Shown: positions 3,323 to 20,432 of the stretch, piece by piece
Layout: each line of letters opens with the position of its first letter
Numbering within the stretch: the first letter of the stretch is position 1
NCBI GenBank assembly: GCA_024704765.1
Contig: JAKMXF010000310.1
Span: 1,114,649 to 1,135,080, forward strand
DNA length: 20,432 nt
Origin: Oopsacas minuta
Lineage: Eukaryota > Animalia > Porifera
Reading direction: 5' to 3'
Notes under the pieces: generated by a model
The model's database searches: none
What the model saw: the letters and a program-made list of their open reading frames with translations, nothing else
Told to the model about the DNA's origin: nothing
Translations under genes and position numbers: made by a program

Positions 3323-3388
3323 CCAGTGAAATTGACTCAATGATCAGGCCTTATCTTTAGTCGGCTATGCTCTATACCAAATTAGGTC

Positions 3389-3850
3389 AGTCATATAGGC
3401 CTACTTGGAATGCTTGTAGTTTGTGAGCTTTGGGGATTTCACACCTTTTCATAAATATCTAAATAATACAAATAATTCGGAACAAATAAATATTAGACCT
3501 GAAATATGTACTACGATTGAAAGGAAGTTATACATGGGATTGGTCCTATTGGCTTTACTAAAACATTATATACACTAAAGGCAATGGTGCTAATTGATGG
3601 ATTTGAACCAGGGACATGTTAAGTCAGTCATAGGAATGACAATTAATAGCGATAATATTGTGATAGTACACTTTGGCACGAATAAATATATTATTAAAAT
3701 TGAACAATACGCCTATTAATGTATGCATTGTTAAGTATAAATAACATCTAATTTCAACTTGTTTCGAATTATTTGCATTATTTCAATATATATCATGAAA
3801 AGGTGCGAAAACTAAAAACATAAACAAATTCCAAGTGGACCAATATGACC
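3389..3850. mobile_element. Non-autonomous element with about 105-bp imperfect inverted arms
   Basis: 3389-3496 (GTCATATAGGCCTACTTGGAAT...CACCTTTTCATA...AAATAATTCGGAACAA) is the approximate reverse complement of 3748-3850. No TSD was identified. Confidence 0.7.
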
Positions 3851-4033: not shown

Positions 4034-4114
4034 GATGATGTTGAAGATATCTTGGTGGTCAATGTCAGTTATATAGAGGCCAGATCCATTTAGTAAAGGG
4101 ACGGGAGGTCCATT
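4034..4114 (-). CDS. Putative host-gene exon (81 nt, phase 0-0): NGPPVPLLNGSGLYITDIDHQDIFNII
   Basis: Acceptor TTTATTTCTTTTAG, donor ATC|GTATGT. Only one frame is open, and it continues the frame of the 47-nt exon across a 128-nt GT-AG intron. Read-through to IVCLLFSRSILDH* is an alternative. Confidence 0.65.
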
Positions 4115-4242
4115 CTAAAAGAAATAAATTGATAATAATTTCCAATAGAAAATAGAGGGTAGCGGATATTAAAGTATTCATATCCAGAGAGTTGAAAACA
4201 TCATCAAATATAATGAATGATATACGTAAATGATTGAATTAC

Positions 4243-4289
4243 CTCAAGGTATATATTGAATGATGCCAGACATGATAATTCACTTGGTC
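4243..4289 (-). CDS. Putative host-gene exon (47 nt, phase 1-0): (G)PSELSCLASFNIYLE
   Basis: Very strong polypyrimidine acceptor TTCCTTTCTATTTTTATTCTTTTAG and donor GAG|GTAATT. It completes a C-x-GP-x4-C motif when joined to the 42-nt exon. Confidence 0.7.
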
Positions 4290-5117
4290 CTAAAAGAATA
4301 AAAATAGAAAGGAAAAGTGATAGAAGAATCTCCCTAAAAATTAAATCCTAAGAAACCACGAATGTATTATGAATTTAGTGGAATATATTTGAAAAAGTTT
4401 AAGGATATCATATTAAATGTCATATTAAATGACGTGCCTAGGTTTGGTTTGACTTTCAATATTTAATCTATGTTATATTGAGTTAAGATTTGATGATTCC
4501 ATATGATGATAAGTAAAACAAACATTATATTAAGTGCCGAAAGATGCTTTATCCTGAGGACATATAATTACTGCATGAGCCCACCTGAATTGCAAAAGTG
4601 CCAAATAATAGAAACTTAACATATAGTATAGAATAAGTAATAGTTGACATAGGTAGTAATTAAAGAATTAGCGCACTGCACTCGCAAGCATATAATTAAC
4701 TAGGCACTTCGCTTGCTAGATGGATGTGAGGCAGCTGGATATTCAATTCGGGCCTTGAATTTAGATTAAGTATCCAAGGCAAAATTTCGTATAAAGAGGA
4801 AACCGCTTAGAACGAACACATATAGCGAAATCACGGCTATTACGAATATACTTCCTCCATCCAGTTTGTTTTCATTTGATCCAATGATATCTACTCAGGC
4901 ATGCTATAACGAATACAGATATAACGAAATCAGGGTATAACGATTATTCTTACACTCCCAGTTACATTAGATTAAACATTCAGATCACGGTTAAAACGAA
5001 TTTAAGCTTACTGCAAAAAGTCTTTGATTTCCAAATAAGCGCGTTCCACTATTAATACACGGATAATATTGTGTTTGACAATTAAAATTGTGGTTTAGGG
5101 AAATTACTACTCCACAC

Positions 5118-5575
5118 TATAGTTAGAATCGGGCACATTTTCCAAAACCCGAGCCCGAGCCGAACCCGAAGTGAAAAATCCTCTAGACCAGTGGTTCTCG
5201 AATCCTTTTCTTCCCCACCTCATAATACAAATTTAAATCTCTCTTAATGGGATCTTTCCGGATTTGAACCGGTTGTTGTGCAGGCACCTCAGAAGAAATT
5301 TAACATCAATAATGTGCTAGTGACATTAAGACCAATATAAAATTTTCGGCCGGCAATTGAGAACCACTGCTCTAGAGTCTAGATCTCTAGTCAGCCAAGT
5401 GAGTTCCAAATGAGATGATGAGTTTAGAATTTTGTATAGATATAATATTTTTGAGTTCTAGGTAAATAATTTCAACTATTTGAATGATATGACTGTAGGC
5501 CACAATGTGCTAAGTACTAAATTATCACCAATGAACATGAAATCAACCTGAGCCCGAACCAATTCGAAAAACTCC
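5118..5575. mobile_element. Degenerate hAT-type MITE with CCCGAA subterminal repeats, hosting the 5189-5370 MITE
   Basis: Left end TATAGTTAGAATCGGG...CCCGAGCCCGAGCCGAACCCGAAGTG resembles the 13604 element (12/16 at the terminus). The right end CCCGAACCAATTCG is degenerate. Confidence 0.5.
5189..5370. mobile_element. hAT Buster/Charlie-type MITE (182 bp)
   Basis: TIRs CAGTGGTTCTC / GAGAACCACTG. TSD CTCTAGAC/CTCTAGAG (7/8) fits the nnnTAnnn Buster-type target. Confidence 0.92.
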
Positions 5576-6375
5576 AACATGACTCCAAATGTGTTTTACA
5601 CAAATTTGAGGGATTATATGATGAAACAATATACTAATTAGGCATTTCTTCCAAAATAGAGATAAACTATGTTTTTCCGTTTCACGTATATAACGAATTA
5701 GGGTTTATAGCGAATAAACTGTGACTGTCGCAATTAGTTAATTATTATAGTGTTCAATTGAGGTGCTGCGGGACTCAATAAACTCATTACGATGTGTCTC
5801 GATATAAAAGCGGCAATTTTCCCCTTTAACAGCCATTATTGGGCGGGCGAGAGGGGGTTCGGTAGTAAGTGGGAAATACAGTTGGGTTCCAGACCCACCC
5901 ACCCAACCAGTTACTACCAGATGTAACTGTTTTCAAAATGCAATTTTTGAAGAACCACCCCTATAATCCACAGAATGGTAGGTCTTAGTGTATAGAATTC
6001 CATGGAATATAATTAGAATTAATTGAATTAAAGTATGATTACGTAGTGTCTATTTACATCGGCCAGTCCCTGCCTATAGACACTTCGCAATGCATATTGT
6101 CTGATAACTACACATCATTGCTAAGCATATCTCGTTCGGATGATGGATTAACCAATGTATATTCACTGGGAACTCTGTGCATAAATAATGTCAAACTGTT
6201 ACTTGTGTACCTCTGTCACAATGCACGGAGTTAGCAGCGAATAGACATTGGAAATTCGTATAATTCTGAGAATGGAATGTTGACACATTCCTGCGTTGCT
6301 TGGGAAAATATATTAACAATAATATCCTAGATATGGAACGTGTGATTAATTACATAATATTTGTGAAAATTGATA

Positions 6376-6478
6376 ATAGCTTCAATATATTTGCTAAAAT
6401 CATGAATTTTTGTACTTCTAATTAACAATGCACTACGTATATATTCCGAGACCAGAAAATAAGTATAGTTCCAGTCCT
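6376..6478 (+). repeat. Dispersed repeat fragment; second copy at 19070-19173
   Basis: GCTTCA(A/G)TATATTTGC...ATCATGA(A/G)TTTTTGTACTT...CAATGCACT...CCAGAAAATAA...TAGTT(C/T)CAGTCCT is shared in direct orientation. Confidence 0.75.
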
Positions 6479-6664
6479 TATATGAATTTGGCTCAGGGCC
6501 GGCGAGAGGGGTTTGCTTGGGGTAAAACAGGTGGGCCCGGGCCTAATACGGGCCGGGTGGATTGGAGGCATTCTTTAGTAATATAAAATACGTATGGAGT
6601 ATTTCTCATAAATGAAATCGATGATACGAATGTCATTTATAAGAGTATATTGTAAAAGATCATA

Positions 6665-6746
6665 CAGTAAACTTCGGATTTAACGACACTCATTTGGAAA
6701 ATCACAAAGGTCGTCATATACGATGTGTCGCTAAATCAGAAGTTGC
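6665..6746. mobile_element. Small Tigger-like MITE with a degenerate right end
   Basis: TA|CAGTAAACTTCGGATTTAACGACAC pairs with GTGTCGCTAAATCAGAAGTT (18/20 over the core). The outermost right bases have diverged. Confidence 0.65.
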
Positions 6747-6851
6747 TCCAAATGTCTATTATATACCTTGATGGATTCCAATACTCATTTTAATATTGTA
6801 CAACGCTCTTGCGAACACCAAACCATACATATGACGAGCAAGTTTGCAGAT

Positions 6852-7442
6852 AAATCCATAATCGTCGATAATAAGGAACTGGTACATTTTCACCTGAAAA
6901 TTTTATTATTGATATGTAAGAATTCACAATAGCCACATTCCTGAAAATTCTCAGATAGAAGTGACCTAATTTGTAAGGGTAATTGGCAAATATATAAGAA
7001 AACTACTCCATCTTTCAAACCATGTAGAACGTTAATTATTAATCTATGTTCAAAATGTTGATGCCAAATGATCTAAAGCCGTTTCCGTACAAAGCATAAG
7101 AACTTTTTCATGATAAAGTTCGTACGTTTCCGGGTTATCGTACAGACCATGGATGTCACATGTTTTGCCAATATCCACTTGAAACTCGATAATCGTGGAA
7201 ATTGTGGTCAAATCAGGATAGCAATTTGATAGTATACACTCAACTTCTCTTACCTTGTAATATATTTTGATATGATATTTCTCAAAATTCTAGCTCAATC
7301 TCAAAAATGACCATTGTGGGCATATTCATGATTACATCATTTGGCAAGAGATATCAAAAAGTATCACAAGGGTATGGGAAGTTGGGTGTATACTACAAAA
7401 TGAATATCCTGATTGACCATAATTTTCACGATTATCGAGTTA
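6852..7442. mobile_element. Foldback element B (same subfamily as A), right arm truncated
   Basis: The left arm matches the reverse complement of A's right arm without the MITE insertions. Core AACTCGATAATCG...spacer...CGATTATCGAGTT at 7183-7441. Symmetry is lost after about 7442. Confidence 0.8.
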
Positions 7443-7881
7443 GAATTCTGGAAGAAAATTCACAGATTAGATGAATTTATTAAATAATTGTCTCGCAAAA
7501 TACAATAAGAGAGCAAAGTACTTCACACAAACAAAATATACAATTGTATATCGTGGATATACGGCTAAAATTTGAGTTGGGAATAGGTCGATTTTTGAAA
7601 TATATTAATAAACATAGTGGTGCAAACATACTTCGAATGTGCCACTTCTGACACTTGTGGCACAAATATGAAAATGCTAATAAGTCAACAAGATTTTTGC
7701 AAACAGTCCGAATATTTATCCTCGGGTAATATACACTCATAAAATCAGCTCGCAATTGTATCAGTATCTATATTGCACAGTCCAATAAACAAAAGTTCAT
7801 GAAAACTTATTAACTAATATCCTGACATTGATCACGTTTAATCTACATTTTCGTTTCTGAAATATTTCATGCTCATTTAAA

Positions 7882-8487
7882 TGAATACGAGCCTTTGGCT
7901 CGTCGCTTCGCCATGAACTCGGCGCATTAGGCCTCGAGGTATTCAACGGAAAAACAAACAGACAAACAACAATAGAGATTAAATAATATTGATGTTGTTT
8001 ACAATATTCAGACTCAGCATACTCGTTATAGTCGTTGAAAGTATGATTCTACCTCAATTTTGAAATTTGTTTACTATATTCATAAAAACAACAATAAATG
8101 TAAATAAGAAAACTTGAAGATGCGAAATTCTGGTTCAGAATATAGTGTCATCCCTGTGTAGCCGTTGAAAGCAAACCTGTATGTATACTTTGAAAGTTGG
8201 CTAATTTGTTTACTATATATTCATAAAAACAACAATGAATTGACTTATGCTTAATCCAAAAGTGTGAAAATCGGATTCAGCATGTTCAATATATTTAGTG
8301 AAGTATTATTGAATTCTATTTTCTTCCTTGATAAACACGATAAATACATAGTTACGCGATAATTTCAAAATTGCATACTATAAATCCTTTCCTTGACACG
8401 GACAAACAAACAAACAAACAAACAAACAAACAAACAAACAAACAAACAACAAACAAACAGACAATCATTGAGATTTAATAATATAGA
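7882..8487 (-). mobile_element. Non-autonomous Helitron-like element, copy 1
   Basis: On the minus strand it starts A|TCTATATTATTAAATCTCAAT followed by a (TTTG)n microsatellite. It ends near the hairpin ACGAGCC-AAA-GGCTCGT (7887-7903). It has no TIR or TSD, and about 450 bp are colinear with 13729-14483. There is no canonical CTRR end. Confidence 0.65.
8402..8459. repeat. (ACAA)n microsatellite inside the Helitron-like element
   Basis: Near-perfect tetranucleotide run; the paralogous position at 14432-14456 carries (GACA)n. Confidence 0.97.
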
Positions 8488-8963
8488 TTTAGATTTTAGA
8501 CTGAAACCTGAAATCAGAACCTTGTAATAAGAAAGAATAAGAACTTCCATTGGAATTTTTGAATAATGTTGCAATGATTTGCGTAAAGTAGAGTAATTTT
8601 GAAATTTGCTATATCATGAAGTAGCCATTTTGGGGCTTTTGAGGCCGCATTTTGCGGCGTTGCCATGATTTTAAGTTAGGCTTCTGCCATCCCGGGCCCG
8701 TTTTATAATGTGAGAGATGTTGCACCTCTCAGTATTGCGGAAAATTACCTGCCAAATGTAAATGAAAAAGTAACTCCTACTTATAGCTAATAAATTCCAA
8801 AAAATCCTTGTTGACTAAATAATAAAGAAATCAGATATGCAATTCAACAAAATGAAATCAATAAGAAAAATCAATAGCAATTCTTGAATCTAGGATGGCA
8901 AAATCTTAATAAGCTGCCAAAAATGATGAAATAAATTCAAGGTAATATAGACAGCAGAGCTGC

Positions 8964-9046
8964 AAATGGGTCAATGGGTCAGATGGGTCACTTTTTTAAG
9001 ATGGGTCAGTGGGTCATGGGTCATGCGTTAATGGGTCATGACCCAT
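8964..9046 (+). repeat. Left subterminal TGGGTCA array of the hAT element (probable transposase binding sites)
   Basis: Seven direct copies counting the one in the TIR, one degenerate copy (TGCGTTA) and one inverted copy. Confidence 0.85.
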
Positions 9047-9367
9047 CAAATTTTTATTTATATACTATGTAGGCTTAAAAGAGTTATTTGTCAATTAGAA
9101 AACCTTCTAAATAGAGTTAATAGAGGTGGTCATTATACTAAATGTTTGGAATACTACAAGTGAGAGTCATATTATGTCTTCAGGTGTAGTAACTGCAATC
9201 ATCAATTAAGTTTTCGTGTCTTAATCTTATCGGCAAACCTACTATGTACAATATTACCGGAATCTTAGGATTGCAATTCAAATAGACAGAAATCTTCAAG
9301 TATAAATATATATCTAGACTGACAGTTTTCATTTATATATTCCTCTGAGATCTACTTACTGTAGTGA

Positions 9368-11310
9368 ATGTCTAACAACTGTGAAGATGTAAGGGCTGCT
9401 CTCCACCATGGTGATATGTTCTTATGCAACAACGACTACCCAAAGTGCAAAGCAGATGTGTGGAAGAAATTCCGATTGATAAAAATCAAAGCAACTAATG
9501 AATTACTATTTGGTTGGTCAGCCTGTAAAGAGTGCTTCGCATGTCTAAAATTCAAAGCAAAACAAACTGATGGCTCTGTTAGATTATATGGAACTAAAAA
9601 TCTCGCGGACCATTGCAAAACCTGCTCCCCCAAAGGGGAAACTCAATCTTCTGTAGCAAGTTTTTTCAAGAAAACCCCAGGAAAGCACTTCACGAGAGAA
9701 GAAGGGAAGCGAGTGAAGGATGCAGAGGTCCGTATGGTTGTTCAAGGTGGTACTTCATTTATGTTTGTCGATAATCCCGGGTTGAGATTATTTGCTCAGA
9801 AAATGATCCAAATTGGAAGCATGTACGGAAATCTTGATGTTAATGACGTGCTTTTTGGTAGAGAAACGGTCAAAAAGTCTACATTTGAGAAAATGACTGA
9901 GTGTCACGAGAAAATAAAGAAATCAATTGCGGAATGTTCTTTGAACAAAATGGTGGCGTTTACTACAGATTTGGCGACAGATAACATAAACCATAATTCT
10001 TATCTCGATTTTACCGTGTTCTAGATAGATGGTTCGTGGACCCTGAATCATTCAATGTATCGATGTTCCTATTTTCCTGAAAAGCATACTGCCGTCAATA
10101 TAGAAAAAGTGATTGATGAAAATCTGTCTGAACTAAATCTATCTCTTGTGGACACGCCATGTACTACTGATAAAGGATCAAATTTCATATGCGCTACTCT
10201 TGCTAAAACCCATGTTGATTGCGCATGTCATCGTATAAATACCGTAATTGACATTGCATGGAAACAAGCTATGGACTCAAATCCTGAACTGAAGCTCCTT
10301 GATCAGTCTGCTCATACTTTGGTAAAATTTGTTAATCAAGCGTGTGGAATTCAATCAGAACTTCCTACAACACTAAAACACGGAGGTGAAACACGCCCAT
10401 GGAGGAGTTTACATTCTATGTTTTTTTCTATTCTAGTGAGTAGGGAGACTTTAGTCATAGAACTTCGAAAATGAAAACGAGAGAATTTAATTTATCATTT
10501 CGATATCGATTAGTTAAGGGAAGTTGTTGAGTTTCTATCTGGTTTTTCTGATTTATTTGACTTGCTAGAATATGCCAATAAACCGACCCTTCAAAATCTC
10601 GTTCCAGTATACTACACGCTGTACGAGCTTTGGCAAATAAAAGAAGAAGATTCTGAAATACAGCAAGTTCTGAAGGCAGAATTTCTTCCGGTATTGACAG
10701 AGAAGTTGTGGAACAGTATTGAGATGCTTCATCTCAGTGCTACGTTTCTTGATCCATCGTTGAGATCATTTACGTTCGTAAGATCAAAAGTTGATCGGGA
10801 GGGTTTCTTTAGACAGATCAAGGAATCTCTTCTTAGTCTAGCAAAAGAGGTGGATCAAACTAATAAAAGTGTTAATATCGAGGATGTTGCCATTACCACT
10901 TTGAGTTGGATCAATCTAACCTTGATATGCAACCTCAAAAGAAGGTTAAATATGATCCATTCAGTTGGTTTCAAATCAATGAGACCACGACATCAACAAC
11001 AACAAATCAAATTACAGACATTGATTTACAATTTAATGAAGAATTGCAAATGTATATTCAAGAAACTGTTCCGAAACGGGAGAATTTTAATCTCCTTGAT
11101 TGGTGGAAGCAGAATAAACTTAGGTTTCCATTATTATCAATAATTGCCATGAGACTATTGGTAATTCAGGCATCCTCATCCGAAAGCGAGAGACACTTTA
11201 GTGCCTTTAATGCTCGGCATATTGTAACATCTCAGCGGAATGCAATGTTGCCAGAAACTATCGAAGCTGTCTCTGTTGTGTTGGAAGGATATAAAAACAA
11301 CTTAATTTAA
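9368..11310 (+). pseudogene. hAT transposase pseudogene (about 646-647 aa reconstructed): BED finger, DDE core, C-terminal dimerization domain
   Basis: BED finger VWKKF...GWSACKEC...GTKNLADHCKTC; D in TTDLATD, D in TTDKGSN, CACH, TRPW, and E in SSESERHFS; WWKQNKLRFPLLS. In-frame stops at 10022 (TAG), 10472 (TGA) and 10511 (TAG), plus one frameshift at about 10876-10906. Confidence 0.95.
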
Positions 11311-11366
11311 TTATTGTGTTAGACTAAATACTTACATTATACTTGCTCCTAATAATGAAATACATA

Positions 11367-11463
11367 ATGGGTCAGAATGGGTCAGAAAATAATAAATGGG
11401 TCATGGGTCATGGGTCACTACTTCGATGGGTCACATGGGTCATGGGTCACTTCATATGACCCA
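11367..11463 (+). repeat. Right subterminal TGGGTCA array of the hAT element
   Basis: Eight copies in the same orientation as the left array, then the inverted copy within the right TIR. Confidence 0.85.
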
Positions 11464-11918
11464 TTTGCAGCTCTGATAGACAGTATTCTAATGTCCAAAA
11501 AACTGGAAAAATACCAGCAGAAGGTCGGGACTTTGCCCTGGTCACAATTATAAACAATAAATATATACTAAAATTATTACACAATGAAAATAAGTGTTTG
11601 GCAAATGTTCAGCCAAATACAATAAAATAAGTTCCAAATAGCCCGTTTTTGGGAGAGATCTGACTTCGCCCGATTTCATGTTAAATTTTTCGCAAAACAT
11701 AGTAGAACTTCTCCTCTACATTTTCTATTAACCACATACTGCCGGGAAAACAGGTGATTTAATGACATCATCTCGTTTTTGGTGCGGGAATTGGTTAAAA
11801 CCCAGTGGTAAAATTTTTAGTGTTCATTCTCATTACGAACATAACACTTCGGCAGTAATCGGTTAAAATCAAAAGCTAAAGATACCAAGAAAGTTATGCA
11901 TAACAAACTCAAACTCAC

Positions 11919-11960
11919 CATCACATCCATTTGTACAACTCGAATCACACGGTTGGCACC
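11919..11960 (-). CDS. Putative host-gene exon (42 nt, phase 1-1): CQPCDSSCTNGCD(G), furin-like cysteine-rich module
   Basis: Acceptor CACTTACAG and consensus donor ATG|GTGAGT. The phase-1 frame gives four regularly spaced cysteines that join in frame to the 47-nt exon. Confidence 0.7.
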
Positions 11961-12820
11961 CTGTAAGTGTTTCATTGTTGAAGAATTCATTAACTAAAAA
12001 AGTAGAGCAATATAACAGTATCTAATAGATAAAATGGCGATGTCGTAGAGTAGAGTAGAGTGCTAAATTTAGAGGAGATAAATAAAGCAACGAGTGTTAT
12101 CTTAGCAGCTGATTCAGCAGCCGATTCAAATCCCCACTAAAACACCTTTTTCTCAAAAAGTATGGGTTCCATTTTGAAAAGGATCATGCCAGTGTCAAGA
12201 AGAAAGTTGGTACATTTCATATCATCACTCATAATCGCCAAATTTTACATGATGAGTAAGCAATTTTGCATTACATTTTGGTCGAGGTTTTTTATTAATA
12301 TCTTCTGAAATAATTGTGATAACAACTTATCATTTTAATCATATTTACATCTCGCTTGGTACATTGTGCATATCCAATTTGAAATTAAAATAATTATTTT
12401 TGAAAATTTATGAACGCCCGAACTTTACATAGGAATTACATAGACGACCAGTTTTTGCTTGATGATTTGTATGCTTTGTAGCTATGTATTGATTACTTGA
12501 ATATTCTTAGTGTAAATTTACTTAAGATGACTAATTTCTTGAGGTCAAATGTATTCCTTCCCAATTATTAGGACCAGTTATGTCAGTTTAGATTTTTGAA
12601 GTTAGTATTAAATTAAGCATGTAATATCAATCAACAAGCATTTGTAACACTGTAATTGATTTATTTCGTTTCTCACGACCTTAATACTTTTGATATTCTT
12701 CAACTTTATTGTATTTCAACTTCATTTCTTCCACAAATTTTCTTCATACAACAGTCCTACTAAATTTCATTTCAATTCAATCATGTGAGTATTTTTCTTA
12801 ATTAATTTTGTAATGTTACA

Positions 12821-13002
12821 CAGTCAACTCCCGTTATATCGAACATGGATAATTAGAAATCTTCGCTATATCGAAGTCTGAGATTATACAAATATAGTCA
12901 CAAATCGTTAAAGAAACATAAATGTCATCGGTTATATCGAAATCCGCGTGTATAGAAGTAATTATTGCGGTTCCTTGCTTCCGATATAAGGGGAGTTGAC
13001 TG
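12821..13002. mobile_element. Tigger/pogo-like MITE (182 bp)
   Basis: 23-bp TIRs CAGTCAACTCCCGTTATATCGAA and (rc) CAGTCAACTCCCCTTATATCGGA. TA on the right and CA on the left (mutated TSD). Confidence 0.88.
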
Positions 13003-13063
13003 TAGTTGTATACAAATGTGTCAGAAAATTAGTCGTTCCTTTTGGCATAGATTGTGTTCTTAC

Positions 13064-13080
13064 TTCCAACCATGACATCT
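13064..13080 (-). CDS. Candidate micro-exon (17 nt, or 15 nt using the second AG): DVMVG(R)
   Basis: Acceptor ATTGTTCCAG(AG), strong donor GAA|GTAAGA. It ends in phase 1 and gives VMVGRCQPC when joined to the 42-nt exon. Confidence 0.45.
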
Positions 13081-13603
13081 CTGGAACAATTTGTAATTGA
13101 GTAATTAATAAGAGCTAGAGACTTGAAATTTAGCATATGTGAAATGTGACAATTCTAGGGACAAGTTCAAAGTTCTAAGATCTAAGCGCTATCTTAAAAG
13201 TACTCTGAGATAGGTGTCAAAATGTATTGACCTATCAGATTTGAGGTTTTACAGATTGTGGGAATATTACCATCATATGTTAGGCTTTAACCCAGAACAA
13301 TTAGGATGCAAAAAATTACTCAATAGTCCCAATTGTGCAAAATAATTCAAATTTCAAATTGTTAAACCTGTAACCATGTTTGTTAATTAAAATGTACTTA
13401 GTACTTAGCCAATGTAACCACCACTATATTGTGGACGATATGTACATACTCACTAGTTTTGTAAATTAATTGAATTGTCAAATGGTATAAATATGTAACT
13501 ATGATTATGATTATGTATTAATTTACAAATTAAATTTAACTACTATTTTAACATTCAGTGAAATACATCAAAAATAAATCTTTCAATGATTTATTACGCA
13601 GAC

Positions 13604-17050: not shown

Positions 17051-17944
17051 CAAGTTTACAAATATGATTTAATGAATCACACATTCCATATCTACTGTAG
17101 AAAATATTTTCAGGTCGAAAGGCGTCGTGTGATCGTATAATAGGCTGATTTTTGGGAAATGCTCCAATTTTGAAGCACTATAAAATGCAAAATATTGATC
17201 TTTTATATTAAGTTCAATTATGAAATATTTGCTAAGTATTTTATATATAATTGTAATGAAAAAGTTGACTCATATTTAGTACAGCCGAAACCTTGGAATG
17301 CACTTTGTATGTCAACACTCACTTATAACTCGATAATCGTCACAATTATGGTCAAATCAAGATAGCCAATTTACAATACATAACTAACTTCCCAACCCCT
17401 GATAATACATTCTGATATGATATCTCTGAAGATTATTGCGGAATCTTGAAAATGACCAAATATATGGGGATATTCAGGATTGTGTCAGAAATGTAGTAAA
17501 ATTTACCCAAGAACGGGAGTTACAAACTGGTCTCTTAGTTTCATTGCCTTCTCGGTGACAAATATAGCAGTATATAATAGGCGATAGGTACGAGATATCC
17601 ACAATAAAATGTATTAAAGGGTATATACGTATGGGAAGCGTGTATGTTTAGAAATTGGCTATCTATATTTGGCTATAATTGTAACGATATCAAATAAGCG
17701 AATATTGACATGCAAATGCAATCAATCGTCTCGGCTGAAATTAAAATTGAGTCAACTTTTCATTACAATTTTTCAAATATTATATAAATGAATTGAGTAT
17801 CAAAGATCAATATTCTGCATTTTAGTGTTTCAAAGTCGGAGAATTTTTCCAACAATAAACAAAATAGGTCGCACGACATTTTTCGACCTGAAAATATTGT
17901 CTAGATGTGAAAGTGTGTTTCGTTACCTCATATTTGTAAATTTG
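17051..17944. mobile_element. Foldback element C
   Basis: 17051-17420 pairs with about 17600-17944 (e.g. TTTACAAATATGA, AATATTTTCAGGTCGAAA, AATGAAAAAGTTGACTCA, CAGCCGA). It has the same core and spacer as A/B, with about 100 extra bp in the spacer. Confidence 0.85.
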
Positions 17945-19342: not shown

Positions 19343-19363
19343 CTTGGCAATGTGAAAGAGCAG
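19343..19363 (-). CDS. Candidate micro-exon (21 nt): ALSHCQ (phase 1-1) or LLFHIAK (phase 0-0)
   Basis: Very strong acceptor TTCTTCCTTCTATTCGCATTTTTTTCAG and donor AAG|GTATTT. The length is a multiple of 3, and it lies outside recognised repeats. Confidence 0.4.
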
Positions 19364-20432
19364 CTGAAAAAAATGCGAATAGAAGGAAGAATATAAATTC
19401 TCTCATCTAGAAAGGTTTGAACTGGTAAGATCTGAAAGTTTCGGTAGTGGAAAATGCCAAAATGATGAAGAATAATAGTAGCTAATTGATATAGGGAAAT
19501 ATACACCATATAAAGTAAATATCTAAAATTAGGAGAATATAACGAAAAATAGTATCATAAAATTACCAAACCAATGAAACAAAGAGATGTCAGACTGCCA
19601 TTGTATTTATGCTCAAATATTGCCTGTAGTCAGCCTATATCAGAAATAATAATAAATAGAAGCAATCTGATCGATGTGGGAGGCATGACATGAGAATCTT
19701 GAATTATATTAGCATAGATGACTAAAGATAAGGCTGTAATTTTAACCAAGGATAAGAGGAAGTGGATATTTCATGGACAATTCTATGTATAAATTCGGGT
19801 AATAAGAAACTGGTGCATGCGTGCATTGCGTTAACGTGGTTCGGATTAATGAGGGTCTACTTGAGTCCCTAGCCCTCATTGCATGTCTAACACTATCCAA
19901 GGGAAAAATTCACCTCAATCCAAATATTGAAGTAGAGGCACAAATACAACAGTGAGTGTTGTTGTTTAGGATTTTGGCCCGCAATACAAATCTTAATAGC
20001 ATATCCTTGATACGGTTCAAAATCATGCGATAATATCTATACGTAAGATTTTGACCTGAATCAAAATGTATTTCAGCCAGGGAGTTATAGAAGTGGTACA
20101 ATTGCAGAATCTTACACCCCCAACTTTTTTAATGTGGTCAAAAATCCCTATATGCACCGTTCAAGAACTCGTTAAGAGAAGTTGATAGAGCTAAAGAAAT
20201 CCAAAATCGGATTAAAATTGACAAAGTAACGAAAAATTTACTCCCTAAGCCAAATCCTATGAGGAAAATTGTATTGATTTATACATTACAATTACCATAG
20301 GAATGCTCATACTGTTGATATTGCGGTTATACACGCTTGTTACTCTACTCTTTCATGCTCATTTGTTTGCTATTCAGTGTATTTCACTGCAGGTAATTCT
20401 TCTTACTTTAAAGGAAAGCTGGTAATTACATA

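Follow-up and report, generated by a model that had tools for sequence, protein, structure and literature searches.

Organization of the locus

The stretch of DNA considered here, hereafter the window, comprises 20,432 nucleotides of a scaffold (C310:1114649-1135080) of the glass sponge Oopsacas minuta, is thus not human DNA, and was compared with the sponge's own genome (61,460,524 bases in 365 contigs). An initial annotation had proposed that the window conceals a minus-strand gene of tiny exons, lying in the gaps between transposons and encoding a cysteine module of the furin-like or EGFR type. All four segments of this proposed gene (13064-13080, 11919-11960, 4243-4289, and 4034-4114, exons 1 to 4 in the direction of transcription) were found, all of them bordered by an AG acceptor and a GT donor, and their reading frames join as had been claimed. 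To judge from sequence comparison, the locus contains a furin-like repeat that is probably real in its ancestry and whose two parts are separated by a putative intron of 7.6 kb. The revised exons, the public gene model that shares two of them, and the surrounding repeats are listed in Table 1.

Three of the segments (11919-11960, 4243-4289, and 4034-4114) are each single copy in the own-genome search. Segment 13064-13080 is not: together with both of its splice sites, it lies within an interspersed repeat. High copy number, named beforehand as a finding that would count against the gene, was observed for this segment, and exon 1 is refuted. Alignment of repeat copies identifies it as transposon sequence, the 17-nt segment with its CAG acceptor and GTAAGA donor being kept in five aligned copies from other scaffolds, two of which carry a single-base change over this region. 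A paralogue or parent copy, as expected for a transposon-captured fragment, was sought genome-wide at the DNA and protein levels, and none was found.

Table 1. Features of the locus in window coordinates (strand given where assigned)
Feature	Coordinates	Strand	Remarks
Exon 2′ (revised exon 2)	11919..11993	-	75 nt, phase 1-1; profile match, splice signals, single copy
Exon 3	4243..4289	-	47 nt, phase 1-0; acceptor at 99.7th percentile; starts (G)P-x4-C; annotated exon 2 of LOD99_7835
Exon 4	4034..4114	-	81 nt, phase 0-0; annotated exon 3 of LOD99_7835; no recognizable domain
Rejected exon 1	13064..13080	-	part of interspersed repeat
Interspersed repeat, ~1.0 kb	12090..13096		at least 20 copies, 89-97% identity, other scaffolds
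LOD99_7835 first exon	6767..6887	-	ATG at 6887; donor AAG/GTATAT, phase 1
LOD99_7835 last exon	3387..3458	-	3458-3390 plus TGA stop; in inverted-repeat arm
Speculative upstream signal-like exon	19343..19406	-	ATG, 21 codons; phase-1 donor CAAG/GTATTT, fits exon 2′
hAT transposon inside putative intron	8955..11475	+	terminal inverted repeats starting CAGAGCTGCAA; subterminal ATGGGTC repeats
Older dispersed repeat, just downstream of exon 2′	11541..11866		271 first-look candidates, 68-90% identity
Foldback-type repeat	6852..7447		matched in both orientations; 534 first-look candidates

Similarity of exon 2 to furin-like repeats

Two small hidden Markov models (HMMs) were built from the cysteine units (FU/GF_recep_IV) of three Pfam-confirmed genes of the same genome, two EGFR-type receptor kinases and one furin-type convertase. 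The open frame of exon 2 scores 20.8 and 22.3 bits on the two models (E 3e-5 to 1e-4 over the 140 kb that include 60 kb on either side of the window); among the 7126 six-frame pieces of these 140 kb, the runner-up reaches 10.6-11.6 bits. Against 20 Mb of Markov-3 simulated sequence, searched by hmmsearch with HMMER default filters, the two profiles reached at best 10.9 and 17.7 bits. Extrapolation to the whole genome gives a chance of ~0.05-0.1 for the exon 2 score, which may be higher in real DNA. In a BLASTP comparison, the exon 2 frame matched EGFR-like and furin-like open reading frames of the same genome (E 0.007 and 0.014). Protein language-model neighbors, to be taken as leads only, fall in Furin-like_2, GF_recep_IV, and VSP clusters (score 0.79). 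When the genome was scanned with PF00757 and PF14843, no match fell inside the window, and the frames of exons 2 and 3 yielded neither relatives nor transcript-derived fragments in word-index protein searches.

The upstream boundary originally assigned to exon 2 is probably wrong. The acceptor at 11961/11960 is weak, with a pyrimidine content at the 38th percentile; 33 nt further upstream, the acceptor at 11994/11993 ranks at the 98.5th percentile of the window. Alignments to furin-like units extend past the former site and up to the latter. Since the alignments reach this strong acceptor, 11993-11919 is the better exon, here called exon 2′. It contains the earlier segment, lies within a single-copy island of 208 bp (11882-12089), and ends in a donor, ATG/GTGAGT, at the 99.5th percentile of the window. 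Its translation consists of an aromatic lead-in followed by C-x2-C-x3-C-x3-C-x-G.

Codon usage is a weak guide at this locus. Exon 3 and exon 4 score at the 99th and 92nd percentiles of background, and the high score of exon 2 arises only because the training genes are cysteine rich. Elsewhere in the window, an (ACAA)16 microsatellite at 8402-8464 yields a cysteine-rich artefact of CLFV repeats in minus-strand translation and is a source of false cysteine-dense frames.

Completion of the motif across the putative 11919/4289 junction

The cysteine motif C-x2-C-x3-C-x3-C-x-GP-x4-C had been claimed to form only across a long intron. This holds true for the junction 11919/4289, with the amendment that the boundary of exon 2 has to be moved as described above. 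When 11919 is joined to 4289, the spacing characteristic of furin-like repeats, C-x2-C-x3-C-x2-3-C-x-G-x4-6-C, is obtained. The sequence downstream of exon 2 contains 593 AG sites, 292 of them followed by an open frame and a GT donor. A single one among the 593 completes G-P-x4-C in the required phase, and this site, 4289, is one of the three acceptors of the public gene model LOD99_7835. In splice-signal strength, exons 2′, 3, and 4 rank in the top few percent of the window, and the exons have a GC content of 0.36-0.48 vs 0.25-0.36 in their flanks.

These observations bear on the possibility of pure coincidence, in which a cysteine-dense open stretch of AT-rich junk was joined by eye to unrelated GT-AG segments and the public annotation is an ab initio artefact. 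Cysteine-dense stretches are indeed cheap: four cysteines within 13 residues occur in 95% of Markov shuffles of the window, and the exact spacing C-x2-C-x3-C-x3-C in 4%. Many windows were scanned, no curated family model matches, and one of the four segments did turn out to be repeat sequence. However, the exon 2 score exceeds that of every other piece in the 140 kb by ~10 bits and the best simulated scores by 4.6 and 9.9 bits, depending on the profile, strong splice signals are present on both sides of the junction, and the sole acceptor able to finish the motif had already been annotated. Taking the score of exon 2 together with the single motif-completing site and its independent annotation, we regard coincidence as very unlikely.

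The public gene model LOD99_7835

The suggestion that annotation pipelines could miss the gene can apply only to exon 2, which is absent from the public model; exons 3 and 4 were already public. When the exon 4 frame was used in a full phmmer search, one real match was obtained (E 2.5e-10): KAI6650784.1, a hypothetical protein of 106 aa encoded by LOD99_7835. Exons 3 and 4, with the junction 4243/4114, are exactly its exons 2 and 3. Unlike the arrangement proposed here, KAI6650784.1 begins with another first exon and hence lacks the four-cysteine part. This exon, 6887-6767, competes with exon 2′ for the acceptor of exon 3.

Should LOD99_7835 be true as annotated (6887-6767, 4289-4243, 4114-4034, 3458-3387), exon 2 would be an unrelated relic of a cysteine-rich gene. 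The public model comes from BRAKER/Augustus with RNA-seq hints, its first exon supplies an ATG as well as a good donor of matching phase, and its 2.5-kb intron is less extreme than that required for exon 2′. Yet the first 36 nt of this exon, including the ATG, lie in the edge of the high-copy foldback repeat, and the last exon is carried by one arm of a local inverted repeat (3390-3497 vs 3747-3849). Both of these overlaps with repeats make the model weak. The protein has no Pfam family, is without relatives in a word-index search, stands alone in its 90% cluster as an orphan, finds no relatives in a metagenome scan, and is poorly folded in its Atlas model (pLDDT 0.37). Furthermore, the model leaves unexplained why exon 3 opens, in the right phase, with the exact residues that finish the exon 2 motif. 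We judge this alternative quite unlikely.

Exon 4 contains a short NHL-like motif (G-x-L-Y-[IV]-x-D ... I) and, in a phmmer search of 1.8 billion proteins, weakly matched two long repeat proteins (E 7e-5 and 3e-4). Within 60 kb, exon 4 was the sole match to an HMM built from NHL-like units, and an NHL or YWTD propeller was rejected: whereas NHL-type beta-propellers have five or six consecutive blades, no further blade was found within this distance, and there is no Pfam match. The motif is probably a chance resemblance.

Comparison with furin-like repeats and EGFR-type receptors

The same genome encodes three carriers of furin-like units with which the locus can be compared: two EGFR-type receptor kinases (C354:725502-730046, minus strand, and C298:165144-169400, plus strand), both with L, Furin-like, L, GF_recep_IV, and kinase domains, and a furin-type proprotein convertase (C297:154508-157354, plus strand). 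The spacing at the locus equals that of one unit of the C354 receptor up to C-x-G-P, after which the C354 unit has a longer loop, and the two share the aromatic lead-in and the residues C-x-P-C-D-S-x-C. In contrast to furin-like repeats (PF00757 / PF14843), which normally come in arrays, the locus has a single repeat, without an array and without the closing C-x-x-C. The repeat is interrupted by a very long putative intron; the C354, C298, and C297 genes, by comparison, each consist of one long uninterrupted open frame. Taken one by one, the exons at the locus fall below every curated Pfam threshold. Its designation as a furin-like cysteine module is thus upheld by own-genome profile similarity and by the motif-completing annotated acceptor, and finds no counterpart in curated Pfam matches for the individual exons.

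The likeness to EGFR/ErbB receptors is confined to the repeat motif. The own-genome HMMs detected no further FU-like piece in the 60 kb flanking each side; a genome scan with PF01030 placed no L domain in the window, the nearest being 180 kb away; and tblastn of both EGFR-type proteins against the surrounding 60 kb gave noise only. The caution that the gene cannot be named EGFR stands, the L domain, kinase, and membrane helix being missing around the locus. No sign of an extracellular receptor emerged: the lone repeat within ±60 kb is accompanied by no L domain, kinase, helix, Protein Data Bank (PDB) match, or relatives.

A proposed degenerating or lineage-specific single-repeat gene

We propose that the locus harbors the remains of a small-exon minus-strand gene, in which 11993-11919 and the start of 4289-4243 would encode one repeat of the FU or EGFR domain IV type. 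Exon 2′ and exon 3 would be spliced together, or would have been formerly, across an intron of 7.6 kb holding transposon sequence, including a hAT element with its target-site duplication. The gene would be degenerating or, at most, a lineage-specific gene with a single repeat. That the locus is of this kind, and not an EGFR-like receptor, is the reading we favor, at about even odds. The lack of any other FU piece, L domain, or kinase within ±60 kb, the orphan protein with its poor predicted fold, and the transposon surroundings favor erosion over a receptor. Of the steps in this proposal, that of erosion is the weakest.

Several observations weigh against it. All junctions are predictions, and the annotated upstream exon 6887-6767 fits the same phase as exon 2′. 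The profiles are small and dominated by cysteines, and the tails of real genomes are heavier than those of Markov simulations; the genome-wide chance of the exon 2 score by itself may be 0.1 or more. When the open frame of each exon was scanned alone against curated Pfam, no family was found at E up to 10, and a PDB sequence search with the exon 2 frame returned only insignificant TRAP matches. Intact splice sites and open frames would be expected of a live gene no less than of a recent relic, hence the weakness of the erosion step. Finally, an intron of 7.6 kb lies far above the species mean of 341 bp, in a genome with 1.59 introns per gene (PMC10280926).

The alternative of a live gene takes the form of a small secreted, stand-alone version of the EGFR/R-spondin cysteine module, mis-annotated, with mini-exons spread over more than 15 kb (19406-19343, 11993-11919, 4289-4243, 4114-4034) and with introns that are long only through transposons. 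Strong canonical splice sites, compatible phases, open frames, and the GC contrast between exons and flanks are all consistent with such a gene. The signal exon is compatible in phase, and the mature chain would have an even number of cysteines, six. RNA-seq mapping in the published pipeline was limited to introns of at most 5 kb (PMC10280926), making it blind to these junctions. The secretory context, on the other hand, comes only from the speculative 19406-19343 frame, the annotated protein having no signal peptide or membrane anchor; signal-like ATG frames are common in AT-rich DNA, and with two such loci passing the same filter within 18 kb, chance can explain this one. It has no second copy in the ~200 kb of sequence examined. 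Two introns of more than 7 kb would be needed against a genome mean of 341 bp, a single repeat is present where arrays are the rule, no relatives of exon 4 or of the annotated protein were found, and no credible gene end follows exon 4. Both the secreted stand-alone module and the live gene that would encode it appear unlikely to us.

If the 11919/4289 junction is used, LOD99_7835 is mis-modeled, and a compact genome with a mean intron of 341 bp has at least one gene whose introns were enlarged by recent transposon activity, making the locus a useful test case for the intron-length limits applied in sponge annotation. If the locus is a relic, it preserves a trace of how a furin-like-repeat gene decayed within a transposon island. 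In both cases, little is added to receptor biology, because nothing points to a new kind of protein.

The transposon setting

The Oopsacas genome has been described as 365 scaffolds totaling ~61 Mb, with 36% G+C and 34% interspersed repeats (PMC10280926). The 60 kb around the window consist almost wholly of transposons, belonging to FLYWCH-bearing, mariner-like, hAT, Helitron-like, and foldback families; two of these labels, mariner-like and Helitron-like, were read from open frames, not from family scans. Within the putative 7.6-kb intron, ~4 kb are identified transposon or repeat sequence. The hAT transposon in this intron is flanked by an 8-bp target-site duplication, ATAGACAG, at 8947-8954 and 11476-11483, and at least four other copies share 96-97% identity with it. 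Its transposase frame is broken into several, and a hAT dimerization domain is recognizable at 10906-11310. The insertion looks recent, since the target-site duplication is kept and the copies are 96-97% identical.

Members of a foldback or palindromic family occur at 6852-7447, 2532-2705, 1811-2025, and 17290-17391, with hundreds of candidates genome-wide in both orientations. The whole LOD99_7835 gene lies between inverted arms at 2532-2705 and 6887-7059. At the left end of the window, a G+C-rich (~52%) element encoding a FLYWCH zinc-finger protein is present in two head-to-head copies, one at 190-900 on the minus strand and the other from window position -2065 to 73 on the plus strand.

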